Shown one piece after another: positions 6,832-52,584 of a stretch of 64,000 bases of DNA. This DNA comes from Phaeosaccion multiseriatum (lineage: Eukaryota > Protista > Ochrophyta, other classes), in contig OZ218963.1 of assembly GCA_965112735.1 (NCBI GenBank), positions 2,542,001 through 2,606,000 on the forward strand. Reading direction: 5' to 3'. The notes beneath the pieces were generated by a model that saw only the letters and a program-made list of their open reading frames with translations, did no database searches and had not been told where the DNA came from. The translations under genes and the position numbers were made by a program. Each line of letters opens with the position of its first letter. Position 1 is the stretch's first letter.

Positions 6832-9800
6832 TCATTGCTCCTTGCTCTTCGAAGACCGCCTCCTCACATACAGCATACGACCACCCCACAACACAACAAG
6901 CACAACCAGGGCAATCACACAGCCAACCAGCGGTGTATACTTGAAAGAACCCCCTAACAGCGCGACAACAGAAGACAAAATTTCCCCAAGCACCGGTCCA
7001 AGGATGGCGGTAAAGCTTGCTGCGTTGTACGCTTCTCCCCTATGGCTGTAACAGCGCTGCCAGGGCTTGGATGTGTACCATGTGTACCAGCGACCCCAAG
7101 ACCCTGGCGGTGACGCTTGACTTCGGCCGTCCACATCCTGTCGAGAGGATTGGATTCGATCCAAGCGGCGGGACGGGACGGGGGAGAATGCATCATCGAA
7201 GGGAGTCTTCACCCGTTTCGCCCACTGCACACGGTATCGTACAAGTAAAGTAACAATATCACACGTCTCCATCGTGGAGGGAAGGACGGGGCAGGGGCCA
7301 AAAACTTACCTGTTTGCAACGTTTCCAATGATTGCACCTCTCCTCCTTCTGCCGTTCCTCCTCTTTGTTCTCCTCGACAAGCTGATTCTTCCAGACCCCC
7401 TCGAATGCTGTCTCCGAGCTGCTTTGGGCATTTTCCAGCTCCGGCGCTTCAAACATCCTGTCCACCTGGATATTAGCGTTTCCCAGTGCCATCCACGAGT
7501 CTTCCTTGTGGTGATGACAGGAACCAGAACACCCGAATCCTTTCGGGTTGAGGCTTCCAAGTGTCTTCTTGTCACGACTGAATCTGGGCCAGGAATCCTA
7601 AAAGGAACGAAAAAAATTGAACGTCAGCACAGAAGCCCGCCACCTATCAGGCAGTCACTTCACAAACAGAAGGAGATTCCTCTTACCTCCCACAAAAGAA
7701 CTGTCTCCAAGGAGCAAAACGGACAAGTGAGACGACATCCTCCGCACTCATGTGCAACGTCCCTCAAGACTTCACGCGTCGTCCCCAACATGAAGCCAAG
7801 GGCGCTCGCCGCCACACTCCCATTGCCCAAGGCTACCTTCGGATCCCCAAAGGAAGCAAGGATCAGCTTTCTCTCTCCGACGTCGTAGTTTACGTAGGCC
7901 CTAAAGGGAGAACCAGTGTAGGCCCGCACCGGTGCCAGCCAAGCCCCAGTCTTCCAACGCAAAAAGGTGTCACCAAGCTTAGCCTTCACCAGCGCGCTCA
8001 CAAGGGACCCGATCTTCCAAGAGGGAGGATGGTGTTTCCACTCCAATGTAACCCTCAGCTCCCACCTCTTGAATGCTTTTGCCCATTCGACTGCTTGCTC
8101 TCGCTGACGGCAGCCCTCTCCGCCAGGAATGCTCTCATCTGGTATTCTGAGGGTGATCTGATAGTGTCGGCCGCCATCCTCCAAACTCTCCACCGGAAAC
8201 AGGATGCCTAGATCTTCGAGCTTCTCAAGGATAGCTCTAACATCGCTCTTCTCCAACACGTGGATCCCCATGTCTTCCGCCGCACGCCCCCACTTTACGA
8301 GCACACCATCCCACAACGACTTGGCGAACTCTTCGGTCAACTCTCCATTCAGCAAGTCAAGCGCTCCCTTGAAGTCGTCCATGTGCTCCTGAACCCCGCC
8401 TCGTACTTGCTCTTGCGGTGTCACCTGTCGAGATTGGCAACCGAGGAGCGATCCCATCCATGAGAATGTTATGAACCATACCGGGGGAACAGTGCCTCAC
8501 TCAGCTTGTCCAGAGAGAAAAAAAGGCACGCACCTCGCCTACCACAATCCTCTGGGCATTGCCACGTCCAGTTATGATCATCTTGTCCAATGGAGTCAGC
8601 AGCGGGCTAACGATCCGTGCGAACCAAGCCGAATCGAGAACAATGAGTGTCCTATCGTGTTCAATGTCCCCTACTACAATGAGCACAGCATTGTGGATCC
8701 TGGAAAGGAGAGAGTATATGCGAAAGCAAGGTCAGTTGTAGGCAGTTCCAAAGGGAAAGACTAGCGTTCTGAGCGACTTACATCATCCTCACGACGCAGT
8801 GCAAAACACCTTGCAAGGTAGCCGAATCACCCTCAAAAAGTGATGCCTTGTCCACCCCCAGCTCTTGCTCCTTCCCACGCAGCGTGTCGCATAGACCGTC
8901 CCACCGGGCTCGTAGCTCACCCATGGTCATGATGTAGGGAACACTGGGCCTGCTCTCTTGCGGTGCTGTGGATGAAGATGACAACGCCTTGATGACTGTG
9001 TTGCACAAGACTTCGTCTGTGGTACCTCTTAGAGAGAGAGTCTCCAGCATGATGAGGGCAGCCTGCCAAGGCACACCAACCACAAACTTCCTACAGCCCT
9101 TCGCGTACAGTTCCTCAAGGAGGGCACCCGATGGATCAAACCTACTCCACCCTTCGCTGAGGATTCCAAGAACATTCTTGTACCACGGGGCGCAGCTCAC
9201 GGGGTAGGAGGGTAGGGAGCGCATGGCATCTAGAAAGCGTTCACGTCCAGCACGAGCACGTCCATGTGCTTCTTCTTCTTCCTCTTCCCCCTCTTCGTTC
9301 TCCAGTGATATTGTGAGTATGCCAACCACGCGCTTTCGGATACGGTCGGCCTGCTCTAACACGCGTGGCACTCGTCCCCAAACGGGCACTTTGTCACACT
9401 TGGAACCAACCAGCACCAAACGAGAAGGTCCTGTCGCAACACTTTGGTACCGCAGTGTTTCTACGAAGGGTTCAACGTCGAGCCGCATTCGGTCGTCAAA
9501 GCCTTCCTCACCACCACTCTCACAAAACTCACGTGCCCTCCACAGCAACAGGTAAGTTGCGCCATCCGGACAAAAGAAGGAGTACAAGCTGCGGTACAAA
9601 ATCTGCCCCCCACAATCAAAGAATCGCATTGTGATGGGCTCATCCCTCGGTCCCGTTGCCTCCCAGGACACCATTTCAACCCCTGTAGTTGAGGGGTTTG
9701 CGCCCGTTGTGAGGGCAGCCCGTCGACATTGTAGGCTGCGAAGTAAGCTGTGCATGGGTCGGGGGTGCAGGGCGTGGGGTAAGCCTTTGGAGTCTTTGTC

Positions 9801-12330
9801 TGCAGAAGAGTTCAACCGAAGCAGCCGAGAGAGCAACGAGAATACAAGCCATACCTCGTCTTTCCAGCACCGGATGCACCGAGCAGAACCACTTTGATGG
9901 TGTTGTACACGCCACGCCCCTCCAACACAGATTCATAATAATTTTCGAGGGCGGCGCTGCCTTGTTTAGCTACGCCGAGAGGGGGGAAGTCGAACGGGTT
10001 CCCATCGAAGCCCCCTGTCGTGCCGTGCCGCGCAGCGAAGGCAATAAGGCCTTCCACCTCCTCACAGCTTGGATCCCAAAGCCCTGTGTGCGAGGCGTAA
10101 CAGCACAGAAATAAGAAGAGGGAAAACATTGATGGTGCGGCACACGAAGTCAGTGCACACTTGGAGCGGTGATATGAGGTAAAGGCGGGCGGCATGTTGC
10201 GACAGCTTCCTTACGCAAACCCGATTTTCACATGGAAAAGATGCAAGCTCGAAGAGTTTTCCAGGCTCAGCGGAGTCGCACGTTGGTAACACCACTTACC
10301 GCTGGCTGACATTGTTGTCCTTTAGGAGCAGCCCCCAGTTACACACACTAATATAAGTAAAAGAGACACGAACGGGTTCGCGTACCACTTACCAGTGAGA
10401 TTGTTGTGCCGCAGGCTGAGCACGATTAGGTTCTCAAAACTTCCAAGCTCCCTTGGAATGCTCCCTGCGGAGCGAAGGGGAAGTTCTTTGTCACACGACT
10501 ATCAAACGAATGGGACGCGCACGGGTGTGCGTACCCACTACCTTCTAGACTGTTCTTGTTGAGCTGAAGTTCTCGAAGGTTCGAAAGCTCTCCAAGTTGC
10601 GGCGGAATGTTTCCTGAGATGTGGGGAAAGTTCTTCAGCCACACTAATATCAAGTGAAAGGGACGCGAACGGGTGTGCGTACCACTTACCAGTGAGCTTG
10701 TTTTCGTCGAGGTACAGTCTCTTTAGGTTCTGAAGACATCCAAGCTCGGGTGGAATGCGCCCTGCGGATGGGATGAAAGTCCTTTGATCATACTCATATC
10801 AAGTCAAAGGGACGCGAACGGGTACGCGTACCACTTACCGGTGAGCTTGTTGTTGTAGAGGTACAGGTGCGTCAGGTTCTCAAGACTTCCAAGCTCGGGC
10901 GGAATGTTCCCTGTGGAGCGGAGGAAAGTTCTTTGGTCATACTTACATCAAGTCAAAGGGACGCGAACGGGTATGCGTACCACTCACCGGTGAGCTTGTT
11001 GTTGTAGAGGTTCAGAGTCTGAAGGTTCTTCAGCCTTCCAAACTCTGGTGGAATGCTCCCTGCAATGGGAGAAAAGAGTTCTTTGGTCACACAAATATAA
11101 AGCGAAAGGGACGCGAACGGGTACGCGTACCACTCACCGGTTAGCTTGTTGTTGTTGAGGGACAGTTTCTCAAGGTTCCGAAGACCTCCAAGCTCGGGTG
11201 GAATGCTCCCTGCAATGGGAGGTACGTTCTTGTCACACGACTATCAAGCGAAAGGGACGCGAACGGGTGTGCGTACCACTTACCAGTGAGCTTGTTGCCC
11301 CACAGGCTGAGCACCGTCAGGTTCTCAAGACTTCCAAGCTCGGGCGGAATGCTCCCTGCCGAGCGGAGGAAAGTTCTTTGTCATTCGACTATCAAGCGAA
11401 TAGGACGCGAACGGGTGCGCGTACCACTTACCAGTGAGCCTGTTGAAAGAGAGGTCCAATTGCTCAAGCTTCTTCAGACTTTCAAGCGCCGGTGGAATGC
11501 TCCCTGCGGATGGGAGGAGAGTTCTTTGGTCACACTAATATCAAGTCAAGGGGACGCGAACGGGTGTGCGTACCACCTACCTTCTAGCCGGTTCCCCCAG
11601 AGCACAAGTTCTCGAAGGTTTGAAAGGTGTCCAAGTTGCGGCGGAATCCTCCCTGAGATGTGAGGAAAGTTCTTCAGCCATACCAATATCAAGTCAAGGG
11701 GACGCGAACGGGTACCACTCACCGGAGAGGTTGTTGTAGCTGAGGCACAGCTCCACCAAGTTGGTCAGCCGCCCCAGCTCTGGCGGAGAGGTCCCTGCGA
11801 AGCAGAAGAGAGTTCTTTAGTCACACAAATATGAAGGGAAAGGGACGCGAACGTGCGCGTACCACTCACCGGTGAGGTTGTTGTCGCCGAGGCTCAGCCC
11901 CTCGAGCTTCTCCAGACTTCCGAGCTCCCCTGGAATGCTCCCTGCCGGTGGGAGGAAAGTTCTTTGGTCACACTAATATCAAGTCAACGGGACGCGAACG
12001 GGTTCGCGTGTATCAGACAGATGTATGCGTCTCCCTTCTCTCTCCCCTTCTTTCCTTTCCCCTCTCGAAGGATACACACTAAAATCACGAGGTTCATGGA
12101 AGACCAACCCCCACCTCCGCCCCAACCTCTTCCACGGCCTTCTCACCTTCGAGCCCGTTCCTGGAAAGGTCGAGCTTGACCACAGATCCATTATCCACCG
12201 TCACTCCATGCCACTGTTCCAAAGGTTGTGAAGTCTTCCACCCCCCTCTTTGTGTCCATTGCTCTCCGTTTGTGGCCCCATAGAGGGCGATGAGTGCTTC
12301 ACGCTGCTGCGGCTCTTCTACGTGCGACAT
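6832..12330 (-). CDS. LRR-ROC-COR (ROCO) protein with two C-terminal TM helices, multi-exon
   Basis: Inferred exons: 12330-12147 (LRR N-cap); 11 x 72-bp LRR exons; 10083-9855 ([14 protein letters not shown]); 9747-8782 (SLLRSL, TTGVEM, FFDCGGQ, LVGSKCD); 8699-8534 ([17 protein letters not shown]); 8424-7687; 7597-7310; 7224-6832. All are GT-AG and frame-consistent if the broken exon at ~10300 is skipped. Confidence 0.85.
10290..12010 (-). repeat. LRR exon-intron cassette array 1 (11 intact units + 1 broken)
   Basis: 72-bp exons at 11870-11941, 11723-11794, 11581-11652, 11432-11503, 11284-11355, 11138-11209, 10988-11059, 10839-10910, 10690-10761, 10542-10613 and 10393-10464, separated by conserved 70-78-nt introns. 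Confidence 0.95.
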
Positions 12331-12728
12331 CACGCACTGGGGTGTGCTGGTTCTAAAGAGTCGCCGCCAGGCCGGGAAGCTGCCCCTACCCCTGTGATCT
12401 CCTCCTGCTCTTTTTTCTTTTCCCTACTCCTGTCTCTGGCCCTGCAGGAATACAGATTTTCATGAGGTGCAAGTGCTGCTATTGCCACTGCTGTCGCTAC
12501 AAAAGGAATCCTTCTGGCACTGTCTGCTGCCTTGTTCTTTGGCGCTATCTTTTAAGCTATATTGTCATGTGTACCATTCTATGTGAAATTGTCAAGAGCA
12601 ATCACGTCTGTTCGTTATGGGTGTGTCATAAAAGATGCGGGTGGGGCTGAGAGAGGGCCAGGAAAGATCTCTGCATGCAGGAGCGGAAACCCCATTCGAA
12701 ACGAAGTATTCCGCTCCATTTCTTTCTT

Positions 12729-20042: not shown

Positions 20043-22359
20043 CTAGATCCTCGCATCACCAAGTGGGCTGAATTCTGGCTTATCCTCGCCTCCGTCAGCG
20101 TCTGTCCCTTCCTCTCGCACCACCCCTTCCCCTTGTATCGTCGGGTCTCCCGCACTGAAACAAAACCGCGCAGCCACCCTCATCAAAATATGAACACACA
20201 GAGCAGTTGCGGCGATGATGATGCTGTTTCTCACGATGTGGTCCGGGACGTCTTTAACTCCTCCGAGTCCAGCGAAAAGCATAAAGAAGACGTTCTCAAC
20301 AGCTACCAGCGCAATGACCGCCACCTGCCGGGTTTCGTCTTGCAACAGCGCTGAGACGAAGCCTGCAGCAAAAGCATTGAGTAGGCGCAATCGCTTGCTC
20401 CCCAGATCATCCGTGGTCTTCCCATGCGATTCGATACACCATCGCGTCCAAAGCAGCCAAGGTAAAGCGAGGAAGCAAAAGTTGCCCGTAGTCAACGCAA
20501 AGAGAACCATCGATAACATGCGAGACAAAATGTCCGTCAGGTGGAAGAGCAAGTGCCATCCAATGTGCCGAGCGAGCGCCAGTCCGTACAGGATGTAGCG
20601 TTTCGACGACGCACATAACGCTCCAATAGACTGCCGGGGCGCACTATAGAAGGCTCTGGCGTGTCGTGTTGTGGCCAAACAGAGGGTCTGTAGATACGCA
20701 CCAAGCGACGCACAGGAGGTCCACAGGAAGAGACCTAGCGATGTGTACCATGACGTGCTTCGCTCTGGGGTCTCTTGTGCCGCTAGCTCTTCCGCCGTCT
20801 CTGCTGCCTTCTCCCCAAAAATTTCGAGAGACGCGGCCTCCAGGGAATTTTCTACCTTTTCCGCACTCAAGATGCTCATGAGCTCCCATGCCAACGAGAA
20901 AATCGACCCGAACACCGATATCAAGAGCACATTGGACACGCTGTCAGTATCCCATCGGGAGAGCAGTGCGTATAGCTGAATGAGCATCTGCGGAATGGTC
21001 TCGAAGACCGACTCTCCCCACTTCAGCAGAACCATTCCCGCTGTCTTTTTCCCCCCACCCAGCTCCGATACGCATCAAAAGGAACCAGCAAACAAACCAT
21101 GGCGAGAAAAGGGTCCCAAGATGAGTGTGAAGTGGAAGTCAGGGCTGCCACTCCGATAGTCGGCAACACAAGAAAGGCGACAGCAAGCCAACACAGCGCT
21201 GGGCTATACTTGGCAAACGCTGCTATCGCCGCAATGTCCGAGACCACATCCCAGTAGTAAAGAAGGACATCGCTTGCCAGAAAGAATTTCGAGAGCGACG
21301 ATTTGATCTCAGATTGCTCAATGGCTACAGCTGAAAAGTCGTTCCCCGGAAGTATGTAGTCTTTATCAAATTTCCTCAACCACGACGGAGGAACAACGCC
21401 TACGAGTATACAAGAGCGACAAGCGTGTCAGATTCAAAGTTTAAGCACATCAAGTATGCCACACTCACATAAGTTAGCGTTCACACCAGCTCGAAAAAAA
21501 CAAACAAATCAAAAGACGCGAACGGGTGTGCGTACCACTCACCGGAGAGCTGGTTTCTATGGAGGAACAGATGGGTGAGCTTGACGAGACGTCCAAGCTC
21601 GGGTGGAATGCTCCCTGTAGATGGAGGAGAGTTATTTGGTCATACTCAATCAAGTGAAAGGGAATGCTCTCTGCGGAGCGGAGGTACGTTCTTGTCACAC
21701 GACTATCAAGCGAAAGGGACGCGAACGGGTGTGCGTACCACTTACCAGTGAGCATGTTCATGGAGAGCTCCAAATGCACAAGCTTCTCCAGACTTCCAAG
21801 CTCCCTTGGAATGTTCCCTGCGGAGCGGAGGAAAGTTCTTGGTCATACTTGCAGCAAGTCAAAGGGACACGACGCGAACGGGTGGGCGTACCACTCACCG
21901 GAGAGCTGGTTGTGGTAGAAGTTCAGAACGGTGAGCTGGACGAGACGTCCAAGCTCGGGTGGAATGCTCCCTGCGGATGGGAGGAGAGCTCTTTGGTCAT
22001 ACTCGTATCAAGTGAGCGAAAGGGACGCGAACGGGTGTGCGTGTATCAGATGTATGCGCCTCCCTTCTCTCTCCCCTTCTTTCCTTTCCCCTCTCGAAGG
22101 ATACACACTAAACTCACGAGGTTCATGGAAGACCAACCCCCACCTCAGCCCCAACCTCTTCCACGGCCTTCTTACCTTCGAGCTGGTTGGTGGAAAGGTC
22201 GAGCTTGACCACATATCCATTATCCACCGTCACTCCATAGCATGGCTCCAAAGGTTGTGTCGTGTTCCACCCCCATCTTCGTCTCCATTGCTTTCCGTTT
22301 GTGGCCCCATAGAGGGCGATGAGTGCCTCACGCTGCTGCGGCGCTTCTACGTGCGACAT
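20043..22359 (-). CDS. LRR + XK-related (Xkr/CED-8-like scramblase) fusion, with one frameshift
   Basis: Exons 22359-22176 (N-cap); LRR exons 21970-21899, 21817-21746 and 21614-21543; then from 21399. XK motifs WDVVSD, ESVFETIPQMLIQLY, SIFSLAW and DILSRMLSMVLFA. One-base frame break at ~21047-21056. Confidence 0.7.
21513..22045 (-). repeat. LRR exon-intron cassette array 2 (3 intact units + 1 deletion scar)
   Basis: Same exon and intron consensus as array 1. Confidence 0.92.
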
Positions 22360-22570
22360 CACGCACTGGGGTGTGCTGGTTCTAAAGAGTCGCCGCCAGG
22401 CCGGGAAGCTGCCCCTACCCCTGTGATCTCCTCCTGCTCTTGTTTCTTTTCCCTGCTCCTGTCTCTGGCCCTGCAGGAATACAGATTTTCGTGAGGTGCA
22501 AGTGCTGCTATTGCCACTGCTGTTGCTACAAAAGGAATCCTTCTGGCACTGTCTGCTGCCTTGTTCTTTG
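22020..22570. repeat. Segmental duplication of 11990-12540 (upstream region, N-cap exon, intron 1)
   Basis: Long near-identical stretches shared by the ROCO and XK genes. Confidence 0.9.
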
Positions 22571-23400: not shown

Positions 23401-24187
23401 CGTCACAGAGCGTATTGGACGGACGTTATGCAAATTTTGACTTGGCTACTACGAAGGGAGACTGAGGGTGCCAAGGACGGCGGGGCAGCGGGCTGTGATG
23501 AGTTGTCTCATGGCCTTTGGTGTTGGTGAATGAACGCACACGCTGCGGGGAGGCGGGCGCAAATTACGAGTACGTCGGTAAGCCCCAGGGGAGGGAAAAC
23601 AGCGGCGAGGGAAGGAGAGGGGCGCTCCGGGCCTCGGCCAAGCGCAGCCAGGACCACGCACCAAAAGTTCTCTGGGGTTAAGGTGCAGCCAGATAGGCCA
23701 AAAACTGGCGTCCTCTTGCTCCGTTTTCTTGCCTCCGCCCCTCAGCCGTGCGCATGTTTGCCCACCACCCCTGCTGGACTGCCTGCTGGGGACGCTGTAG
23801 AAGGAGCGGGGACTTACGGTGAGTCGAGGCGCACACGAGAAGCAAGGCAGCGGCGTCCTCCTTGCCCTCCTCTGTCCCTCTGGCGATTTTGCTCCTGCGT
23901 CTTCTCTGGCGAGCATCTTCCGCTCTTTTGAAGAGGAGAGCAAGGCGAGAGCGCAGCAGCGGGAGGAACAGAGGCTGAAGGAGGAGAGCGACTGCAGGCG
24001 AAGGAGCACGAGAGACAGCGTCAGCTGCAAGAGGAGCAATGGCAGCGTCTGGTGGAACGTCTGGTGGAAGAGTTCGGGTGAAAGTGTCACTCATTCGTTT
24101 CGTCCTACGCTGGGCGGGAATGGGCTCATACCTTCCTCCAGTCTGGGTACTTCTCCTCAAACTTGGCGGCATTTTCGTTCAGCACCC

Positions 24188-24691
24188 ATGGACAACACCT
24201 GCAGTGGGTGCGGACTCCCCTTCTGCCCACTGGAGCTGTCGGACGACGAGAGTGAACAGTATGACTCTGAGGACTATGGATTTGGGGAGGATGTGGACGT
24301 GGAACTCCCGCCTCATTGTCCAGGATGGATATCCATGCGGACGCACAGGAGACGTGGAACTCCCGCCTCATTGTCCAGGATGGATATCCATGCGGACGCA
24401 CAGGAGGGGTACACTCCCATTTTTCGGGAGGACAAAACGTCCCTTTTTTTTTCGGGAGGATGTGGACTAGGGAATGTGGCGGTGGTGCAGCAGCTTCTTT
24501 CCGCTGGCGTGGACAAGGAGCATGAGGACAATGAGGGGTGGACTGCTCTCCTGTTCGCGTCTGCCCAGGGACATGCATCGGTGGTGGAGCTGCTCTTGTC
24601 CGCCGGGGTGAGCAAGGAGCATACGAGCAATAATGGGAGGACTGCTCTCTTGTGGGCGTCTGCCCAGGGACATGCATCGGTGGTGGAGTAA
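24188..24691 (+). pseudogene. Short or truncated ankyrin-repeat gene
   Basis: GWTALLFASAQGHASVVELLLSAG and GRTALLWASAQGHASVVE* (stop in mid-repeat); tandem duplication at ~24295-24410. Confidence 0.6.
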
Positions 24692-24744: not shown

Positions 24745-27700
24745 TCACAGCTGTTGTTTCGCCGAAGAAAGTGAGGTCTCTCCCTCTCCCTCCTCATCCC
24801 CCCCCTTCTCCTCCTGCCTCCTGCCTCCTCCTCCTCCTCGTCCTCCTCCCCCTCCCCCTCCTCCTCCTCCTCCTCCCTCTCCATCCTTGTGGTCTTGCCT
24901 TCCAGCACTGGTGCCGTCCGATGGCTGTAACAAGAAAGGGACTTGAAAATCACCCGTTGGATGGATACTATCAGGCAACCTCCTACGCCGAAGCTCCCAA
25001 CAGTACGATACGACAACAAGGGCAAAATAGCCGAGCACCACACATATAACGACGCTGATCTTCACTTCCTTTGCCCCTTCAAGAAAAAAGGTGGTGGCCC
25101 CACTGGCACACAGAAATGTGAGGAGTGTCGTGATTGCCCTCTTACACGTTACCCACTCCGCTGACTCTTGCGTGAGTTTTGCGTCAAAGGCTTGACATGT
25201 GGCTCCAATGGTAACATCCGTGGCACCAACCTCCAAGTCATTTGGTCCCAGGACCACTACAATGGGCTTAAGAGCGGTTGTTGTTGTCCCCTCCACAGGC
25301 GTGACGGGATGTACCATGACGCTCGTAGGCCCAGTCTCACTCTTTAATCGAACCGAGAAAAGAAGCGGGTTGCGCTTGTGCAGCATGGCCTCTCTGCCCG
25401 CGATGAAGCCTTTTCCTGCGTCTTCTGCAGTGAATCCCTGAGACAGGAATGAGAACGCGAGGAAGGAGAAAAGCAAAAAGGGTCGGTGCTGAGAGAAGCA
25501 CAGCAAGCAGCCCCCAACCACTAGCACTAGCTAGGCAGCCCAGTAGATCAAATGCAGGCCCCGTGTTCTTACCAAGGGCCTCATAGGGAGACTACCGACC
25601 CTCTCTGCCGTCGCGTCCACCTTCATTTGTTCCCTTACGTAATCCTTTATACTGTTCCGCGCGTGCCACTTAGCATCGTATTCTCCTTGAACAGTACGGA
25701 GCTCGAAGCGTGTCCCTTCCAGTGCCACGAGGAGGAGCGCTCTATCCCCGTTTCCATATACAATTGAGCACCCAAAAGCAAGCATGGGTCCGACAGCAAT
25801 ATCTGTTGTGGGGGAAACGTATGAAACATACGTAAGACAGGGTTGCTTGGTGTGGAAAGACTGAATTCCAGTTCCAGGGGGAGGTGAGATTGCTTACCTG
25901 GCACAGGGCAGGATATACACAAACAGTTCTTGTCGAACGCCTTGAACTCTACTTCAACAGCGAAGTCATGAGTGCCATCCTCCTCCTCCGGAACCCCCGT
26001 GGGTATCGCCCTCCTCACTCGGTATGACCACCGCCACGCCCGTTTCCACTTCTCGCCGTTGTGCCGAGTATGCACGTTGTGTCGCCAGAGGTTGGGGTGA
26101 GCTGCTCCCATGACGGGATATGACACAAGGATGGGGTGGAGGGGCAAATGCTGAGTGCACTCGAGCGTGATGATCGGGCCAGCCGCCACGTGGCCAGCAG
26201 GCAGAGCAGGTACGTCATCCGGGGCATTCGCTTCGCGGGCATTCGCTGCGGTGTCGAAGTCTACGGTCAGGGTCAGACGCTTCCCCGCTTTCAGCGCATT
26301 CGCTGGCACTGTCACACCCACACCCATGAGCACATCTTCTGAGACGATGCCTTTCCGCGACAAATCCCTCGTCAGCGTGATCTCAGCGGAGAATTTCGAC
26401 CCCCGTGCCCCTCTCTCCTCGATTTTCTCCTCCCACCTTCCTTCCCCGCTCTCCTCGTCCCCTTTCTCCTTCAACCAGGCCTCCCTCCTTCTATCGTTCC
26501 TCTCCTTGTGCCGCGGTACTGTTTCAATCTTGTCCTTTCCTTTCTCCCCTAGTTCTGGAGGAAGAGAAGAAGCACAAAAGCAAGCCAGGAGTGTTGTCAA
26601 CGTTTGCGTGCTTAGAACTTCGCCTCATGGCCACACGTACGCCTCTCACCTCTCTTCCTCCTCGCTTCGTCTACAATTTGTCTCTCAATCTCCGTAACGT
26701 TTCCTGTAGGTTGGGTGCAGAGAGAGCCAGAGAGAGCGTGGTAGGGGAGGAACCAATGCCATGGTCGTGTGACAGTAGAACAGAGACGGTTCTCGCGTAC
26801 CGTGCACGTAATATAAGGGAGGAGCGTTTGTGTTCGCGTACCACCTACCTTCTAGAGAGTTCCATGACAGCCTAAGTTCTCGAAGCTCTGCCAGCTTCCC
26901 CAACTCCTTTGGAATGTTCCCTGTGGAGCAAGGAAAGTTCTTTGGTCACACTAACATCAAGTGAAAGGGACGCGAACGGGTACGCGTACCACTTACCGCT
27001 GAGCTCGTTGTCGTGGAGGTACAGGTACTGCAAGTTGGTCAGATCTCCCAACTCCTTGGGAATGCTCCCTGTGGAGCGGAGGAAAGGTCTTTGGTCACAC
27101 TAATATCAAGTCAAAGGGACGCGAACGGGTGCGCGTACCACTCACCGGTGAGCTCGTTGCTCCGCAGGTTGAGCACCGTCAGGTTCTCAAGACTTCCAAG
27201 CTCGGGTGGAATGTTCCCTGCGCAGCGGAGGAAAGTTCTTCAGCCATACTTGTATCAAGTCAAAGGGACGCGAACGGGTGTGCGTACCACTTACCGGAGA
27301 GCTGGTTTTCCCCCAGGTAGAGCCCCCTCAGGTTCTCAAGACTTCCAAGCTTGGGCGGAATGTTCCCTGCGGAGCGGAGGAAAGTTCTTGGTCATACTAA
27401 CATCAAGTGAAAGGGACGCGAACGGGGTACGTGTACCACTCACCGGAGAGCTGGTTGCTGTGCAGGCCGAGCAGCGTCAGGTTCTCAAGACGTCTAAGCT
27501 CGGGCGGAATGTTCCCTGCGGAGCGGAGGAATGTTCTTGGTCATACTAACATCAAGTCAAAGGGACGCGACGCGAACGGGGTGCGCGTACCACTTACCAG
27601 TGAGCTCGTTCATGGAGAGGTCCAAATTCACAAGCTTCTCCAGACTTCCAAGCGCCCTTGGAATGTTCCCTGCGGAGCGGAGGAGAGCTCTTTGGTCACA

Positions 27701-28248
27701 CTGATATCAAGCTAAAGGGACGCGAACGGGGTGTGCGTACCACTTACCAGTGAGCTTGTTGCCCCACAGGGTGAGCACCGTCAGGTTCTCAAGACTTCCA
27801 AGCTCGGGCGGAATGCTCCCTGTCGAGCGGAGGAAAGTTCTTTGTCATTCGACTATCAAGCGAATAGGACGCAAACGGGTCGCTGGACTGCCACACCGTG
27901 CCGCGCCTCATCCCTTCTCTTATCCCCCTTTGATCGCCCTTCCCGAATATTCTAGACCCATCACAAGTAGATGCATGAACAGAGAGAGAACTTCCGAACA
28001 TTCTGGAAATACTTCAGAATACTCTTCAGTACCTCAGGCGGAACAACCACAATCACGTCTCTCTCACATTTGAGGCCGTTCTGCGCCAGATTAAGCTTCA
28101 CAACATAGTCATTCTCTACCGTCACTCCGGCCCAGTTTTCTACAGGTGCTTTCGTGTTCCATCCTGCTTTGTTAAACCAGTCGGGTCCTCCCGTGGCGTG
28201 GAAGAAGGCCGTGAGTATTCTACGCTGTCCCTCGAGAACGCTAGGCAT
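24745..28248 (-). CDS. LRR + ZU5-like domain + two C-terminal TM helices
   Basis: Exons 28248-28068 (N-cap); 7 x 72-bp LRR exons; 26703-26650; 26554-25898 (GVGVTVPANAL..GPIITLE..PILVSYP, ZU5-like); 25802-25573; 25437-24745. GT-AG and frame-consistent. Confidence 0.7.
26830..27880 (-). repeat. LRR exon-intron cassette array 3 (7 units)
   Basis: Exons 27748-27819, 27598-27669, 27444-27515, 27295-27366, 27146-27217, 26997-27068 and 26849-26920. Confidence 0.95.
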
Positions 28249-33518: not shown

Positions 33519-36500
33519 TGTAAAAGCGACTTGAGCCGCTTAGACAAGTGGTAACACTCGGTACATTATCCGGGATGGAACCCGTTTGCAAGCCCTGCTG
33601 CTAGGCTCTCCTTACCAAGATCACCTTTTCTGAGGGTCCATCGCCACTCAGAATCTACGTAATATAGGACACACCGACCATTGACTTATGGTCCATCTCA
33701 CTCTGAGGCCTTCCAACATCCCCAATGCCTATCCCGTGACCTTCCAACATCCCCAATGCCTATCCCGTAACCTTCCAACATCCCCTATACCTATTTCCCC
33801 TCTGCGGCCACTACCACCGCAAGGTATAGAACCCGAAATGCTGCGCCGTCTCCGCAGCGATGCCCATCCCCCACTTCTCGTGCCACATGGCGCGCACGGT
33901 GCGCTCTCGCTTAGATCGCTGCCCACGCTTGCGCTGCACTCCCGGGTCCAACGCCCCTGGCGCCAAAGAGTCCTCGAATGCCTCTATTGCAGCCCTCTTT
34001 CCGCGCCGCAAGAGCCAATCGTCCCACTCCCACGTCTGATAGCTGCCGCCCTCCCCTACAGCCCAACGTACACAGTACTCGAGCCGGAGTGGCTGCCCTG
34101 TGGCCTTACGCCACCTCATCTTCACTATCCGCGCCAGCTCCGGCTCCCGCCCTACCCCGACCTCCCCGTCGGTCACGCTGCGCTTCTCCTGCAGTGCACT
34201 AGTACCCCAGTGGGCTGAGCAGTAACGGATGTGGTATCGAGCGAACCCGTCTGGTAGCCCTTCCGGCTGGCCACTCACCCCATCAACGAACGGCTTGGTG
34301 AGGTCCCGATGGTACGCCCCTTGCTTGAACTCCACTCCCCCGCCTCTGACCCTCGGCACATCCAGATACACCGTGCTCCGGCGCATCACTGCGTCGTGCT
34401 CATCGTTGAGAACCCCACCATGTCGCGCCTGAAAGGCCTGCTGTGTGGGCCAAGCCAGGACTTCGAACGGTCCGTCCCAAGCATGACTCAGCGCCTTGAG
34501 AGTCTGTGCCTTCTGCTCCTCCATGGCCTCACCCTCCTTCTGCGCCGCCCCCCCTGGACGGTACAAACACACCTTGGTGCCAGGAGGCATCGGCGCTGGT
34601 CAGCGACGCTCACGGTTCTTGAGCTGTAGTCTGCTGCGGTACTCCTCGCGCCTGCCCGTCACCACCTGCGCCGCCGCTGCCATCCGCGCCCTCAGCTCAT
34701 ACACCCATGCCGAAGGCGTCTCGAACGAGCCGTCCTCCTCGAGGGCAGGCAGCATCGCTTGAAGCGGAATCGGGGGGTGTCGACCAAAGAGAGTGTAGTA
34801 CGGGGAGAGGCCTGTGGTCTTGTGAGCCCTACAGTTGTACGCGTACGTGAGCGCGGGCACATACTCGGGCCACTGCTGCATCTGGGCCTCCACCGTCGTC
34901 GCCAGCATGTCCTTCATCGTGGCCATGAAGCGCTCCACTTGCCCATTGGCTTGCTGATGCGTCGGCGTAGTGAAGACTTGTGATGTCTGGAGTACGCGCA
35001 GCACATCGGCCATGAGCGTGCTCGTGAATTGCGATCCTTGGTCACTGACCAGCACCTTGGGCGCCCCCAGCACCGTCACTACATCCCGCACGAATGCCCG
35101 AGCAATGCCCTCCGCAGTATAGTCCTTGGCGCACAATGGCACCACCACCGTCCATTTTGTGAACCAATCTTGAAACACCAAAATGTACTCCTCCCCCCCC
35201 ATGGCCATGGGGAATGGTCCTGCCACGTCAGCACCCATAACCGCCCATGGCCCATTCACGGCCTCCGATGATATGGACGAGAGCGGAACCTGTTGAGGTC
35301 GCCTCCGTGGTGTCTTGCGTGTCTGGCACGCAAGACACGAACAGGCCCAGTACAACGCGTGCCCGTTCATGGAGGGCCACAACACTCGCTTCTGCAGCGC
35401 GTCCAGCATCCGCCCAGGCCCGTGGTGTCCGCCTGAGACTGCATCGCCGTGAGTGGCATGCAGTAGAGCAGGCCTGAGCGCCTTTGGGACACAGAGCTGC
35501 AACCTCGTTCGCTCTACTCGCCACCGTCGCCCCCCGGGGGCCCACTTGCGACGAAGGACTCCATCGCCATCGAGAGAGAACTCCCCCCCGCCCGCATCGA
35601 ACACCCCCTCGCCCGGGGAGGCTGTCAAGACCTTCTGACGCCACACCTCCAACTCAGCGTCCTGCTGCTGCGCCTTCACCCACCACGCGGACTCGTAAGT
35701 ACGAGCCCCATGCAATATGCGGGCTGCGCACGACTGCTCACCCACTGCCGGGGGAACACCAGAGAGGGACCACCCAAATTGCTGCGTAGCAGCCTGCCTT
35801 GCGGACTCCACGTCTGCCCGCGCTGCTGCCTCGCTCGCCGCAGCCGCATAGGCTTCGGTGTCAGCCGCAGGAGTCTCGTCATCCTCTCGCCCCTCCACCA
35901 CCGTGGGCGTGCCGCCAACTGTGAGTCCGTCACCGCCTCCTCCTCCTCCTCCTCCTCCTCCTCCTCCTCCTCCTCCTCCTCCTCCTCCTCCTCCTCCTCC
36001 TCCTCCTCCTCCTCCTCCTCCTCCTCCTCCTCCTCCTCCTCCTCCTCCTCCTCCTCCTCCTCCTCCTCCTCCTCCTCCTCCTCCTCCTCCTCCTCCTCCT
36101 CCTCCTCCTCCTCCTCCTCCTCCTCCTCCGCCGCCGCCGCCGCCGCCGCCGCCTGCAACCCCTCCTCAGCCTCCTGCGCCCACCACTCCATCACCGCCGC
36201 CTGCTGCGGCTGCTGCTGTGGCCGAGGGCGTCGCGCTCTCTGCCTCCACCGTCGATGCACCCACCACGCCCGCTGCCTCGACGGCGGCAGGGATGTCCCA
36301 CGCCACACCTTGGGTCTGCCACTGCTGCTGGGCTTCTGTGGGGGTCACCATGGTGTAGTAACAGCCCGTATCCTCGGCGATGGCACTCCACGTCTTCTCA
36401 ATCATAACCGCTCGAGGGAACGACAGCTTGCCACGGCGCCGCGCCGCGGCCGGCCGATAGCGCGCCCTGAACTGCTCCACTGCTGCCATGAGCTCCGTCC

Positions 36501-37890
36501 AGGTCCACTGGGGGTGTCGGTAAGACAGAAGGATCAGATCGATCATCTCCACTGACTTAGCTGTCGCTGAGAAAATGAAGAGTGGGCTGGCGTGCTCCCG
36601 ATCGGCCCAATACCCCACCCCGGCAGAGACGAACTGCCCTGCGCACATCTCAGCACGCGTCACACCCGCCACCCCGCTATCCACCGCGCTCACTTCCACC
36701 GCCAATGGCACCGGCACTGCACAAGCCCGCATCTTCGGAAGCAACTGTAGTAATGCTGCTACATCGTCGAAAGCATAGCTGAGCTGAGCCGCCGTGAGCT
36801 CCCGCTGCGTCCAATCAGTCTTCTGCTCCTCCTTGCTCATAAAACGCTGCAGAAACATACTAACCAGGTCTGCTAAGCCAATGGGGCGACAGTGCTCTGG
36901 CCACACCTCCTTGAATAGATGCGTCGTGTCGACCAAATTGGCGATGGCCCACACATGTGGCGCCAACGCCGGCCACTTCCCTAGTGCACGCTGGTCGTGA
37001 CGCCAGTGATGCGCCAGCTTCATGATCCCCCCGTCACCCCACAGCTCACTCAGTACCGCCGCGAGAGCCTCTATACCACCATTGACACTCAAACTGTCCA
37101 AATCCACCCAGAACCCACAATCACGCTCCGAATCGGCGACGCCGCTATACTGGACACCCAGAACCCACAATCACGCTCCGAATTGGCGACGCCGCTGTAC
37201 TGGACACCCAATTGCAGCAACGACGCCGGACGAGGAGGGGTGCGTATAGCCCACTCCGAGTCCATGGCCACCACCGTCGCCTCCCTCAGTGCCGCCCGCA
37301 TGGCCCACACCTGCTCCTCCGTACGTATGTACGTGCACCGAGCTGCTGGCACGTGACTGAGAAACGGCGGCAGCTGAGACCACTCCTCGATCAACCGTTT
37401 CTTCTCGTTGATGTGGGGTAGAGTCACTGGAGCCCAACCACATTGCCGCATCTGCTCCACGTGCTGCACCCGAGCCGATCCTAAGCCGTCTGGCGTCTCG
37501 ACCGCCACACTGTCCACGCACAGCGCCTCCAAACCTGCCGACGCCTGCTGTCGCGCCGTGACAGGCGAGAGTCCCTCCAAAGGCACTGACTGAGCCGCCA
37601 CCGCCTCTCCTTGCAACTGCTGCACAGCTGCAACAAAGCGCAGAACAGCCCCCTCCACCTGATCCTCCCACTCTAACGCGAGTGTGTCACCCACCACATC
37701 CACCAACGCCACCTCCACTCCCACCGCATCACACCACTCAGTCACTGGCAAGGGCTCGCGTGACAAGCAGTCAGGCACCACAAGCTCCCGCCCTGGCTTG
37801 TGGACAAACTTGAGATGATGAGCAGAGAGCCGTTCATGCCACCGAAAGAGCTTTGAGTTGGTGTCTTTGTGCGTCGCCAGCCACAGCAAG
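33519..37890 (-). mobile_element. Ty3/gypsy 3' half: RNase H end - DEDDy exonuclease - integrase - chromo-like domain - triple PPT - 3' LTR (33519-33718); inactivated
   Basis: VHKPG..VPDCLSR; VAMDSEW..SLLQL..DWTQRELTAAQLSYAFDD; HHCC; DVAGP, SDQGSQF, NGQVER; YCVRW..TWE. Stops at 36166 and 34600, and a 50-bp duplication at ~37107-37210. Confidence 0.88.
35937..36153. repeat. (CCT)n then (GCC)n microsatellite inside the gypsy pol
   Basis: Directly visible; poly-Gly in the pol frame. Confidence 0.97.
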
Positions 37891-38867
37891 TGTAAAACGA
37901 CGTACGCACGACCGACATGCGCTGTCGCCTACAGATAGGATGGAACTAGACACACGGACAAGGTAACAGCAACCCCAAAGCCAGCCTAGCAGCCAGCCTT
38001 GCCTCTATGAACTTATTGCATGCTAGTCCTAAACGACCACCTTCGCACATAGGATAGTGAGAGCCACGCCACCCGTTCTCACCGCATCTGCCTGGGCCTG
38101 GGCCATTGACTTATGGCCCATCTCATCTGAGGCCTTCCAACATCCCCAATGCCTATCCCGGGGCCTTCCAACATCCCCAATAGCTATCCGCCACTTCCAA
38201 CATCCCCTTGACAAGAGTGTTGCGTGTCCCCACGCAACACAAGCGGATTCGCCTACTGAAGCTCGACTGTCGCACAAGCCTCCATGCTGCTTCCAAACAG
38301 TCCCTAAAGCAGCCTTGCGAGTATCCTTCTCTGTCTCCCGCCAAGCTCCGTGCAACAGCAACAGCCGCGCTGCTGCAACACTCGAAAGCCGTGCCCGCTG
38401 TAGGGCACCGCTCTCGGCAATTCTCTGTCTCCACTGCCCACCAAACTCCAGCATCCATTTCCGTGCAACAACAACATCCGTGCTGCTGCCACACTCGAAA
38501 GCCGTGCCCGCTGTAAGACACCGCTCCCGGCAATATGGTGGGGCGTCAGTGTCCGTATTGATAATATATCTCTACTACTCGCTGATGCAAAGCTTGTGCC
38601 CACAAAGAGGAGGGTGAAACGCCAGAGCCGTTGATCCCCCTCGGGGCGTGCCTAGGAAACCGACATTCTTATTATACCCCAGAATGTATGACCGGAAACC
38701 CTTAGGCAGGACAATCTACCCTACTACCCCCAAGCGACAGTTCGAGTCGACGCGGAAGCAAATGTGTCTATCCGGTGTTTGTCCTCTTGCGCGTGCGCGC
38801 AGGTCGCGCCGGAGCGCGGGCCGAAGAAGTGCGGCGATCGGCGCGCTGCTTCTGGGCTGCCTGTCGT

Positions 38868-39291
38868 TGTAAGAAGGCATCCTTTTGCTAGGCTGGCAGC
38901 TATCCACTGCATATTCACGGGGGTAGCTGCCAGCCTAGCAAAAGGATGCCTTCTTACATGCCTGTCATTTAAGGTCGATCCTTCCCCCCCCTCCGAAAAC
39001 TCCTCCGAAAACCTTGGGGGGGTAACTACCTAGGATTTCTCCCACACCGAGCCCGTTACCTCGAATTTCAGTGTCATGCCCAACTTTCGCCCTCGGAAAT
39101 TTTCTCACCATCCACAGAATCGAACCCCGTCTGGGCATGTAAGAAGGCATCCTTTTGCTAGGCTGGCAGCTACCCCCGTGAATACCTTAACTGACAGGCA
39201 TGTAAGAAGGCATCCTTTTGCTAGGCTGGCAGCTACCCCCGTGAATATTCAGTGGATAGCTGCCAGCCTAGCAAAAGGATGCCTTCTTACA
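38868..39291. mobile_element. Hairpin-ended element R3
   Basis: TGTAAGAAG...CTTCTTACA ends, TSD TCGT, ~91-bp palindrome at each end. Confidence 0.88.
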
Positions 39292-40451
39292 TCGTGTCGC
39301 AAGGGTGCGGAGATAGGTTCAGACTGCGCTGACTAATTGCTTGTCCTGATGTTTCTGCAGGTAGGTCTCCAGTAAACGTGGAGTGTTCTCGTGCAGTGTC
39401 TCGATGGGCTCCTCGCTATTCTCGAGGGCTTCAAAGCCACGCCACTTAACAATGACATGCCATGAACCATCTGCGTGCTGAACGAGGCCTTCAAAAGCCT
39501 CCACCACAAAGTCTTGGGTGTTGTATGAAATCTGCTGTAGTACGTCGGTGGTGACGTTCACGTGAGCACCGCAATAGTATCGGAGGCGGCTGACATGTAC
39601 CTCAGAGGTACCCTTCCTGCCTACCAGCTCTTCCACCTTGTATACGTGCTGCTCAAGGGCTTCAAGCACTCGGCAGGGTCCATGCCACTTGCCTAGTATC
39701 TTGCTTGTGGGCCCTACTGTTGCCACGAGCACATAGACTCCGACCTGAAACAGCGTCTCGCTGTTGAGCTGCTTTGCTCTGGCCAAGTCCTGGCGATGAT
39801 CTGCACCACGTCTGCCGCTCATCAGCCTCTGGTTGATGCCATCTCGCTTGTGATCGCGGAGGGTGGTCAAATGACGCTCCGCTTCGGCGCGCTGCCCCTC
39901 CTTCCTCTGATGGAGTTGTGTCGCAAGGGTGTCTCTCTGCGCCGGGGTCAGCTGCAGTAGCCGAACCTTTTGCAGTCGATCCGCATCGTGGATCAGAATC
40001 GTGTCGAGAGGCCGCTGTGGTACGTGACCGCTGTGCAGCTGGATGGGAGACATGCTAGACCGACTGCTCTTGTTGGAGCTGTTCTCAACAGCCTCCATCA
40101 CTGGCAGTAGTTGCGGCCATGTCTCGGGCGGCTGCCGTAGCTCAGACATCATTGATCTCATGATCTTCTGCAATGTCTGTACACCACGCTCGCCCAATCC
40201 TCGACTGTATGGGTTGTGTGCTACCACAAAATGGTGGTTGCACCGCAAGAGCTGACTTAGCTCACGTATCATTTCATTTAAGAAATGACTGCCTCGGTCA
40301 CTCTGCCACCTGGGCACTACGCCATGCTGTGCGAACCAGCGCAATAGACCGCGTGCACACACTCGTGCAGTAGCTTCCAAGCATGGCTCATACATTGACA
40401 ATGACGAGAAGTCATCAAAGATGCACAGCACTTGCTTTACATGAAGCTTCA

Positions 40452-41043
40452 TGTTGGAAGGCCTCAGATGAGATGGGCCATAAGTCAATGGCCCAGGCCC
40501 AGGCAGATGCGGTGAGAACGGGTGGCGTGGCTCTCACTATCCTATGTGCGAAGGTGGTTGTTTAGGACTAGCATGCGATAAGTTAATAGAGGCAAGGCTG
40601 GCTGCTAGGCTGGCTTTGGGGTTGCTGTTACCTTGTCCGTGTGTCTAGTTCTATCCTATCTGTAGGCGACAGCGCATGTCGGTCGTGCGTACGTCGTTTT
40701 ACAGATAGGATAGAACTGCCTAAGCCTCTTGGCTAAGTGCTGCTTTCGGGCCTTTGGGGTTGTAAAACGACGTACGCACGACCGACATGCGCTGTCGCCT
40801 ACAGATAGGATAGAACTAGACACACGGACAAGGTAACAGCAACCCCAAAGCCAGCCTAGCAGCCAGCCTTGCCTCTATTAACTTATCGCATGCTAGTCCT
40901 AAACGACCACCTTCGCACATAGGATAGTGAGAGCCACGCCACCCGTTCTCACCGCATCTGCCTGGGCCTGGGCCATTGACTTATGGCCCATCTCATCTGA
41001 GGCCTTCCAACATCCCCAATGCCTATCCCGGGGCCTTCCAACA
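40452..41043. mobile_element. Foldback insertion of two inverted R1 LTRs
   Basis: TGTTGGAAGGCC...GGCCTTCCAACA ends, TSD TTCA; removing it restores the integrase frame GFMKLHVKQ. Confidence 0.88.
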
Positions 41044-42683
41044 TTCATGAACCCTTCTGGGGACTCTGCCCATATAACTCCATCGCCAATCTTGACGAAG
41101 TCAAACCAGATGAGCTGCTGGGGTCCAGTAGCGTGCCATTGAGCTAGCAGGGGGCGAGGCACTCTCTCGCCCTTGCCGTTGGTGAGGCAGTGGAGACAGT
41201 TCTGAACGAGGCTTCGCACGTTCTTGTCTAGCGCATGCCAAATGAACTTCTCCTTAATAGCACTCAAGGTGTTTGTCTCTCCCTGATGGCCCATCATACC
41301 CTGATGGCCAGTCACACACAGTCTCAGGTGCATGTCCTCCGCCTTGGCTCCCACCGAGGGAATCCAAATGCGGGTGCTGTCAGCGGGGTTGCTCGTCGGA
41401 TGGCACGCTCGAATCAACCCGTCGTCGCCAACTGATGAGAGGAGCAGGCGGCGCCCGTTCTCTCCCACCTCCTTGCTAGCCTGCTGGAGCTCCTGAAGAG
41501 CGTCTGCCTGCAGACTGGCAATCTCAGTCTTGGAGGGCCAAGTGAAGTCGTCACACATAGTGTCAAACACTTGCATGGGCCCAAACTTGCCCAAAGCGAG
41601 CACACTAGGGGTAAGGCTCACTGGTTGCGTGTACCGCCTGCTAATGGGGTCGGCCCAATCATGGAGATGACCAGGGAAGTGGACAATGACGTAGTCAAAG
41701 CTCTGAAGGCGCACGGCCTGACGCTGCAGCCTGTCCCTCATAGGCTTAGTCATGCCAGGGTACCTGCTGTCGTTGCTCATCATGAACGCCTGGTTGCGAT
41801 GGTCGCAAAAGATGTGCACTTTCTGTGCCCCGACCAAAGCGTACTCGTTCTGGATCAAGCCTCGGAGTGTCGCGTCTCCTTCCTTGTCTATGGTGGCACG
41901 CCTCAGCTCTGCGCCTTCAAAAGCGCCTGAGCCGAAGGCCACTGGGATGTGGTTCATCTCATGTACCGGAAGGCACAGCTCTTTGGGGTCGATGTATGTA
42001 ATCATACATCCCCAGTAGAGGTCGCTAGCATCTGGGAATACCAGTGCCAGTTTGGTTGGGTCTGGGTGCGACAGCACCGTGTTCTGTGCAAGGACGCGCT
42101 TAATCTGGAAGAAAGCGTCGTCGTGCTCTGTGTCCCACCCCACAGAGGCCAACGGAATCGTCTTGGCCACTGCCTTGGAGCGCTTGTGCTGATGAGGCTT
42201 AGCGTTAGCCTGCCCGAGGGCTTTGTTCAACAGCGCGTTCAAAGGACCCACTAGCTTAGCGAAGTCCTTGATGTATCGATGAAACCACTGCAGGCTGCAG
42301 AGGAAAGTCATCAAATCTCCAGCCGTCTCTGGGGCCGCGAGACTGGTCAGGCCCTGCACTCTGGCGGGGTCATGTCGCGTGCCGCGTCGGTCGTGCACGC
42401 GGCCTAGGAACTTAAGCTCTTTGCCGAAGCGGAAGGAGCTCAACCCTATGTTGATGTTGGCGCTGTGGAGGCGCTTCATCGTCAGTCGAGTGAGGCGCAC
42501 CATGTCCTCTCCCACCTTTGCCCAGTACGCTACGTTGTCAATGTAGACGGCGTGGGTCTTGCACAACTCTTTGCGAAAGAGGTGGGTCATCTGGCCTTGG
42601 ACGTAAGCGCCCGAGTTCTTAGCCCCTTGGGGCACTCGAGTTGGCGTCACTTTGCCATTTGGGAATATATAGGTGTGAGCAAC

Positions 42684-43069
42684 TGTTAGAAGTCGTACTT
42701 TTGCTAGACTGATACCTGCCCTGTCTGAATTGTTAGAAGTCGTACTTTTGCTAGACTGATACCTGCCCTCTGAATTCAGACCGGGAGGTATCAGTCTAGC
42801 AAAAGTACGACTTCTAACAAGACCGTTGCTAGAGGACGAACCCCCCCCCCCACCGCACATAGTGGAGAGAAGTAACTCGCGGTCTGAGAATCAGCATCAT
42901 GGGCCGGCAAGCTGGTAACAGTTTTCGCCGAAAAATACGCTTTTTCACAAGCGACAGCTAAGGTTCGAACTCACAACTAGCCTTGTTAGAAGTCGTACTT
43001 TTGTGTTGATACCTGCCCTCTGAATTCAGACCGGGAGGTATCAGTCTAGCAAAAGTACGACTTCTAACA
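42684..43069. mobile_element. Hairpin-ended element R4
   Basis: TGTTAGAAG...CTTCTAACA ends, TSD CAAC; inserted in the family B RT. Confidence 0.88.
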
Positions 43070-52482: not shown

Positions 52483-52485
52483 CGT

Positions 52486-52568: not shown

Positions 52569-52584
52569 CACGTCGTACGGCACT

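Follow-up and report, generated by a model that had tools for sequence, protein, structure and literature searches.

In the resistance-gene clusters of plants, ectopic gene conversion and unequal crossing-over in leucine-rich repeat (LRR) regions leave patches of near-identity, mosaic genes and variation in repeat number, and in the VLR system of lampreys LRR cassettes are copied by a gene-conversion-like process via short end homology, the germ-line genes being incomplete and assembled somatically in lymphocytes. Closer to the case considered here are the ROCO genes of brown algae. In Ectocarpus these carry 72-nt type I LRR exons with the register GxxPxxLxxxxxLxxLxLxxNxLx, their LRR domains are recombination hot spots in which both intra- and intergenic recombination has been traced, with pieces imported from other scaffolds, and 46 loci that are neither ROCO nor kinase genes but have type I exons "may act as a reservoir of diversity" (Zambounis et al., 2012, Mol Biol Evol, PMC3341825). 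The exon-shuffling structure of ROCO genes has been confirmed in four brown algae, in a study that also deals with alternative splicing, and the COR domain of brown-algal ROCO proteins escapes InterProScan (Front Plant Sci 2024, PMC11378527). The present analysis concerns a 64,000-nt stretch of the genome of the ochrophyte Phaeosaccion multiseriatum (assembly GCA_965112735.1, contig OZ218963.1, positions 2,542,001 to 2,606,000 of the forward strand; hereafter the window, numbered from its first base), in which three receptor-like genes share nearly identical stretches of LRR cassettes. These are a ROCO gene, a gene with an XK-related exon (the XK gene) and a gene whose effector was labelled ZU5 in an original prediction made from the bare sequence, referred to here as the ZU5-like gene; all three lie on the minus strand. 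The sharing is very probably the outcome of ectopic gene conversion in the germ line, with type I LRR cassette arrays as the partners, and the case is a clear, well-resolved instance of the published brown-algal LRR exon shuffling and not a new kind of system.

Each cassette is built on one 72-nt exon encoding one 24-residue LRR in the register GxIPxxLxxLxxLxxLxLxxNxLx. The cassettes of immediate concern are the fifth of 11 in the ROCO gene (ROCO-5) and the first of seven in the ZU5-like gene (ZU5-1), the positions originally predicted, together with the second cassettes of the XK and ZU5-like genes (XK-2 and ZU5-2) and the second cassette of an LRR-Roc-TIR gene on contig C3 (C3a-2). The exons and shared tracts within the window are as follows.

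11284-11355, minus strand: ROCO-5, LRR exon 5 of the ROCO gene; 72 nt, phase 1, plus a split Gly codon.
27748-27819, minus strand: ZU5-1, LRR exon 1 of the ZU5-like gene, after the N-cap exon.
21746-21817, minus strand: XK-2, LRR exon 2 of the XK gene; 67/72 identical to ZU5-2.
27598-27669, minus strand: ZU5-2, LRR exon 2 of the ZU5-like gene and partner of XK-2.
11265-11416, minus strand: tract common to ROCO-5 and ZU5-1, ROCO side; 152 nt ungapped with 3 mismatches.
27729-27880, minus strand: partner tract in the ZU5-like gene, beginning at the intron core within the 248-nt N-cap intron.
11229-11427, minus strand: tract common to ROCO-5 and C3a-2; 199 nt with 2 mismatches.
11218-11291, minus strand: tract common to ROCO-5 and XK-2, ROCO side; exact, covering the last 8 exon nt and nearly all of the downstream intron.
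21680-21753, minus strand: partner tract in the XK gene, covering the end of XK-2 and the downstream intron; 74 nt, exact.

Between 11270-11416 and 27734-27880 there are exactly 3 mismatches in 147 nt, where about three had been estimated: C/G at 11307/27771 in the exon (Ser/Thr), C/T at 11359/27823 in the intron and G/A at 11409/27873 in the intron core. All are private to ZU5-1, and C3a-2 agrees with ROCO-5 at each site. The full ROCO-5/ZU5-1 tract begins in the conserved intron core upstream and takes in the 3'-most 61 nt of that intron, the whole exon and 19 nt of the following intron, within its conserved start. The tract shared with C3a-2 exceeds it at both ends, terminates in the variable part of the intron and includes 167 nt, at 11251-11417, without any mismatch. 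The tract shared with XK-2 starts 8 nt before the exon end and finishes 8 nt short of the following 3' splice site; the identity proposed for 11221-11291 and 21683-21753 holds at 71 of 71 positions and belongs to a full exact run of 74 nt (11218-11291 = 21680-21753). XK-2 and ZU5-2, whose resemblance had likewise been pointed out, match at 67 of 72 exon positions (93%), and their tract ends 15 nt upstream of the exon. Identity is 98-100% within the tracts of 152, 199 and 74 nt as compared with 60-85% in the flanking cassettes. By four-way alignment and anchored extensions the tracts form a mosaic with sharp edges, their endpoints overlapping but differing by partner, and exon frames and splice sites are intact in all copies. 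The divergence of the surroundings is as first described: ROCO-6 and ZU5-2 are 69% identical, and the 25 genome matches to the N-cap region of the ZU5-like gene do not include the ROCO N-cap.

The genome search covered a 67-Mb assembly of 22 contigs and returned at least 182 cassette-like DNA matches. Only three exceed 88% identity, namely the two window copies and C3:5479355-5479501 (contig and position), which is 100% identical over the 147-nt query and had been missed by the original prediction. This third copy is LRR 2 of a 15-cassette LRR-Roc-TIR gene whose downstream open reading frames (ORFs) score 36.9 bits for Roc (PF08477) and 53.5 bits for TIR. The 24-nt intron variant carried by the shared cassette was expected to be rare and occurs in exactly three exact copies in the 67 Mb, at ROCO-5, ZU5-1 and C3a-2; its sole near copy, with 2 mismatches, is at C15:548870. 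Whole-gene duplication as the link between the ROCO gene and the C3 gene was considered and ruled out, the Roc regions being 36% identical and the rest of the arrays approximately 75-79%. The proposal of exchange between genes with different effectors is supported by these data, although its two-gene scope was too narrow, at least four genes being involved.

An all-against-all identity matrix, one of the checks originally suggested, places the ROCO-5/ZU5-1 pair as an outlier. Among the 21 window cassettes mean exon identity is 69% (standard deviation 8%), with means of 78% and 76% for 60 nt of upstream and downstream flank, respectively; ROCO-5 and ZU5-1 reach 99% in the exon and 97% upstream, and ROCO-5 and XK-2 reach 100% in the downstream intron. 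A wider catalogue of 189 cassette exons of 72 nt in 18 arrays, drawn from the window, 50 kb of C3 and loci from the genome searches, has a mean exon identity of 64-66%. Under a column-profile null evaluated by a Poisson-binomial test, in which two independent draws are expected to be 66% identical, the probability of at least 71 matches in 72 exon positions is 2e-14, and that of at least 130 in 133 positions of exon plus anchored intron is 5e-25 for one pair, or 9e-21 after correction for 16,149 inter-array pairs. When all ROCO cassettes are compared with all ZU5-like cassettes, the top pair stands at 98.5% and the runner-up at 85.7%. A Sawyer-type run-length permutation on 212-nt units found the ROCO-5/C3a-2 pair significant genome-wide (0/300).

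The arrays in which these cassettes reside are built to a common plan. LRR exons are separated by introns of approximately 76 nt with GT-AG ends, the first two bases of each cassette exon complete a split Gly codon (G|GN), and its last base opens the next codon, which is classical phase 1 or phase 2 in the general feature format (GFF). The window holds 21 cassette exons in total, 20 of 72 nt and one of 75 nt, the register is uniform in all of them, and upstream of each array the first exon of the gene supplies the start codon and an LRR N-cap.

10393-11941, minus strand: ROCO cassette array; 11 LRR exons (10 of 72 nt, 1 of 75 nt), introns 70-78 nt.
21543-21970, minus strand: XK cassette array; 3 LRR exons.
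26849-27819, minus strand: ZU5-like cassette array; 7 LRR exons.
12145-12330, minus strand: ROCO first exon, with start codon and LRR N-cap.
22174-22359, minus strand: XK first exon, within a 5' module of approximately 520 nt.
28068-28248, minus strand: ZU5-like first exon, with start codon and N-cap; 92% identical to the N-cap exon of the C15:548350 gene.

The ZU5-like N-cap exon ends in T (28066-28070, minus strand), in contrast to a G in the homologues on C15, C11 and C3, and owing to this T the codon split between the N-cap and LRR 1 is TGG (Trp) in place of the conserved Gly.

In plant resistance genes the LRR arrays lie mostly in single exons, whereas here exon and intron are exchanged together and the partners occupy different contigs and carry different output domains; unlike the lamprey VLR genes, all of the arrays are complete in the assembly and nothing indicates somatic change. 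The resemblance to the type I LRRs of Ectocarpus is closer and includes one 72-nt exon per LRR, the same register, an LRR array at the N-terminus with Roc and, putatively, COR behind it, recombination within and between genes that can be traced, and non-ROCO type I loci as a proposed reservoir (PMC3341825). There are differences as well. The introns in P. multiseriatum are very short (~76 nt) with highly conserved 5' ends; a pattern scan of the window found no cassettes on the opposite strand, unlike Ectocarpus; the inactivated cassette remnants seen in Ectocarpus introns (PMC3341825) have as a possible counterpart a single deletion scar in the XK array; the partners are XK-related, orphan ZU5-like and Roc-TIR genes; and for one cassette a likely donor lineage can be named. 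With the four brown algae the locus has in common repetitive in-phase LRR exons, a putative COR region missed by standard domain scans and LRR-only or other loci as a shuffling reservoir, and the "phase 2" reported there matches the phase found here if the GFF convention was used, the convention being unstated in the paper (PMC11378527). That study deals with gene families and splice variants; individual near-identical cassettes in genes with different effectors, and their tract limits, are not part of it.

The conserved start of the cassette introns, referred to above as the core, comprises their first 33 nt, in which major-allele frequency is 85% as compared with 75% in exons and 70% at third codon positions. 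The core motif has 198 matches in the genome versus 0 for a control, and for each of the 100 matches listed, both the contig and the coordinate range are ones where cassette arrays are found. At C10:563327-568232 the spacing of the motif alternates between approximately 590 and 740 nt in place of approximately 149 nt, which may point to arrays of another architecture or to a gene fragment repeated in tandem. A hairpin in the core was considered as evidence and rejected, as the DNA structure predicted for it has little stability (-4 to -5.7 kcal/mol, z -0.4 to -1.6), no better than that of shuffled sequences.

Downstream of their arrays the three window genes carry effectors that are mutually unrelated (Roc/COR-like, XK-related and an orphan ORF). 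Protein searches used single ORFs or exons.

8781-10195, minus strand: Roc GTPase exons of the ROCO gene, with the P-loop GASGAGKT in 9815-10195 and the motifs DCGGQ and SKCD in 8781-9836.
7663-8457, minus strand: COR-like region of the ROCO gene; 28% identity (E 9e-17) with the ORF that follows Roc in the C3 gene.
20046-21035, minus strand: XK-related exon; PF09815 at 26.2 bits versus a cut-off of 24.8.
25851-26393, minus strand: effector ORF labelled ZU5 by the original prediction, an unconfirmed label; one genome paralogue.

The Roc ORF of the ROCO gene scores 19.5 bits against PF08477, below the cut-off of 27, and is 36% identical (E 5e-19) to the Pfam-positive Roc ORF of the C3 gene; Pfam detects no COR domain in the ROCO gene. 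On these similarities the gene is accepted as what appears to be a diverged LRR-ROCO gene. The PF09815 match in the XK gene covers profile positions 130-175 of 337 and falls within one exon only. The effector ORF of the ZU5-like gene has a single genome paralogue (C6:3889206-3889745, 83%). It has no Pfam match even at E 10, PF00791 has no match anywhere in the genome, searches of PDB sequences and a word search were empty, a full HMMER search returned only spurious matches to beta-rich bacterial proteins, and a single-sequence fold with pLDDT 32 did not confirm ZU5. Language-model features from the ESM Atlas alone point to ZU5/FIIND clusters (score 0.95). The ZU5 identity given to the third gene is accordingly left unconfirmed by Pfam, PDB, word search, HMMER and fold, and the name serves as a possible lead rather than as a finding. 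Upstream of the C6 paralogue there is a much longer cassette array (C6:3891779-3894510), and its N-cap is only about 79% identical to that of the ZU5-like gene in the window, while genes on C15 and C11 have closer N-caps and different 3' parts; 5' modules and effectors seem to have separate histories. An ankyrin-repeat ORF (Ank_2, 50.6 bits) at 23819-24688 on the plus strand faces the ZU5-like gene at its 3' end in convergent orientation.

The direction in which the shared cassette travelled can be approached through the 5' module of the ZU5-like gene, that is, its N-cap exon and 248-nt intron, close relatives of which are on C15 (89%) and C11 (92%). Piece by piece, the ZU5-like and C15 genes compare as follows.

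N-cap exon: 92% identical.
Intron up to the core: 93% identical.
Core to the exon edge, containing the rare variant: 91.5% identical.
Exon: 72% identical.

With the C11 module homology stops at the intron core, and C11 does not carry the rare variant. The near copy of the variant on C15 sits in the homologous cap-adjacent intron, and the neighbours of ROCO-5 and C3a-2, both of which are internal cassettes, are without it. Homology to the C15 module stays colinear across the variant, and the simplest view is that the variant is native to the ZU5/C15 module, in the intron next to the cap. The donor was thus probably the lineage of the ZU5-like 5' module, and ROCO-5 and C3a-2 were the recipients.

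With a common frame, common splice sites and homologous introns, ectopic homologous recombination could overwrite or add a single cassette and leave the gene unbroken, and its most likely form would be germ-line gene conversion of short tracts between non-allelic copies. Such exchange would do no harm because exons agree in length, phase and splice sites, and the conserved intron starts would help it to occur. The unit transferred appears to be the variable 3' part of an intron together with the following exon, the same unit being carried by ZU5-1, 16 kb from ROCO-5, and by C3a-2, and a second, overlapping tract connects the XK gene with the intron that follows ROCO-5. The finding of different partners with different overlapping endpoints argues for repeated short-tract conversion and not for a single collapse or polishing error. 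Several observations weigh against this interpretation or the direction assigned to it. The C11 module has a ZU5-like N-cap and yet lacks the variant, and the exons of ZU5-1 and C15-1 are only 72% identical. The suggested gene-conversion test, carried out as the run-length permutation, is significant genome-wide for ROCO-5/C3a-2 but not for ROCO-5/ZU5-1, because the run is interrupted by the three mismatches and little of the 212-nt unit lies outside the tract; it was judged unsuitable for this pair and the column-profile Poisson-binomial test was used in its place. For ROCO-5/XK-2 the permutation gave 21/300, which is informative pairwise and falls short of genome-wide significance. The cassette catalogue is a partial sample of the genome (18 arrays), and we infer the non-reciprocity, direction and age of the transfer from one assembly.

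Reliance on the assembly raises the question of whether short-read polishing or repeat collapse might have copied one cassette onto others, as the identities are read from it, the cassette family is large (at least 180 detected copies) and ROCO-5 and C3a-2 are exact over 167 nt. The three copies, however, are spread over two contigs, each in a unique context of its own, the three differences in the ZU5 copy show that nothing has collapsed there, and typical cassettes, at approximately 65% identity, are far below the level at which cross-mapping would affect polishing. Endpoints moreover vary by partner with frames and splice sites all kept, and the arrays, at 0.4-1.6 kb, are shorter than single long reads, so that an artefact of this kind is very unlikely. 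Hardly credible is the suggestion that the copies descend from one ancestral array without exchange, their identity being held by purifying selection or by convergence on one binding specificity. The exon does encode near-consensus LRR residues, and the same start is found in several cassettes, but the identity also covers 61-80 nt of intron with a variant found at no other site of the genome, which selection on protein would not keep. The copies occupy different array positions (5, 1 and 2) and stand among diverged neighbours in genes with diverged or unrelated effector domains, and synonymous and intron sites within the tract are not as diverged as they are in neighbouring cassettes. Insertion of a cassette through unequal crossing-over or replication slippage, with a repeat added and none overwritten, is compatible with the different lengths of the arrays compared (3, 7, 11 and 15 cassettes), with a deletion scar indicating that copy number does change, and with identical tandem cassettes within arrays on C1 and C5. 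A reciprocal crossover between contigs would nevertheless join flanks, and the flanks of each copy stay native. Insertion is a variant of the ectopic exchange favoured here and not an alternative to it, an outgroup array being required to distinguish gain from replacement, and as the actual course of events it is highly improbable.

It is also conceivable that exchange is site-directed or programmed, with the 33-nt core acting as a recombination signal for dedicated and possibly somatic machinery, comparable to that of lamprey VLR genes or of antigenic variation. The core is more conserved than the exons and, among the matches listed, confined to LRR arrays, the arrays start at the core, homology between the ZU5-like and C11 modules is lost exactly there, many tract ends lie inside it, and somatic recombination was raised as a hypothesis by Zambounis et al. 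(PMC3341825). Several breakpoints are nonetheless clearly outside the core (ROCO-5/XK-2, ROCO-5/C3a-2 and XK-2/ZU5-2), the core has few informative sites and for this reason hides breakpoints, its predicted hairpin is weak, the germ-line arrays are complete, and no somatic recombinants or recombinase have been reported (PMC11378527). A site-specific signal at the core is not needed for the exchange, and a programmed mechanism is distinctly unlikely. In its most developed form such a proposal would make the core a dedicated signal for programmed, possibly somatic copy-choice that moves cassettes among Roc-COR, Roc-TIR, XK-related and ZU5-like receptors, an alga-specific counterpart of VLR; the chance that this is correct is small enough to mark it as speculation. 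Ectopic gene conversion in the germ line is retained as the explanation of choice.

Near-identity of single cassettes is not confined to the copies described above. Nine of the 16,149 inter-array pairs are at least 97% identical as isolated cassettes, once three tandem gene copies on C16 are excluded, and they include pairs between C11 and C16, C16 and C6, XK-3 and C11, and C14 and C3; identical tandem cassettes occur inside the arrays on C1 and C5. The arrays at C11:498767-499487 and C16:499273-499938 have four near-identical cassettes in common (70-72 of 72 exon bases), with the two middle cassettes apparently swapped (a-b-c versus a-c-b in sense orientation). The three tandem LRR-ROCO genes on C16 (206515-208205, 220414-222700 and 234947-236062), approximately 14.5 kb apart and with long runs of 100% identical cassettes, are a recent segmental duplication and are distinct from the single-cassette events.

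A recurrent process is also suggested by two features of the window arrays. The ROCO and XK genes have 5' modules of approximately 520 nt that are approximately 96-97% identical (12020-12541 versus 22050-22570, minus strand) and that consist of the upstream region, the first exon and the start of intron 1. Outside this module similarity falls to the ordinary cassette level, and several residues distinguish the two encoded N-caps. In the XK gene, the 131-nt intron between LRR exons 2 and 3 (21615-21745, minus strand) is the scar of a deletion of approximately 91 nt, in which a normal cassette intron is followed by the first ~10 nt of an LRR exon (AGAGCATTCC) and the 3' part of another cassette intron; the deleted stretch begins at exon base 11 and is bounded on its other side by the end of the intron core, where there is TCC microhomology.

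Elsewhere in the window, the region 37846-53470 contains several dispersed repeat families of 93-100% identity (for example 40451-40703 = 45389-45641 and 38534-38719 = 47676-47861), which are likely to be young transposable elements. At 35857-36240 a long (TCC)n/(GCC)n microsatellite is set in a GC-rich stretch, and a 510-aa ORF at 1072-2601 on the plus strand encodes a Laminin_G_3/concanavalin-like lectin domain (40.9 bits).

To the published account of exon shuffling in brown algae this locus adds tract limits at base level, the spread of one cassette over three genes and two contigs, a proposed donor, and partners of the XK-related, ZU5-like and Roc-TIR kinds. It represents a clean, datable transfer of a single cassette between receptor-like genes with a plausible donor, and the three defined sites bear on whether exchange is germ-line or somatic and whether it proceeds by conversion or insertion. 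As a result one repeat of the ligand-binding surface is now common to receptors with different output domains, whatever immune role these receptors may prove to have. Base-level support is thereby provided for the published idea that non-ROCO type I LRR loci may be a reservoir of binding-surface diversity for ROCO receptors.

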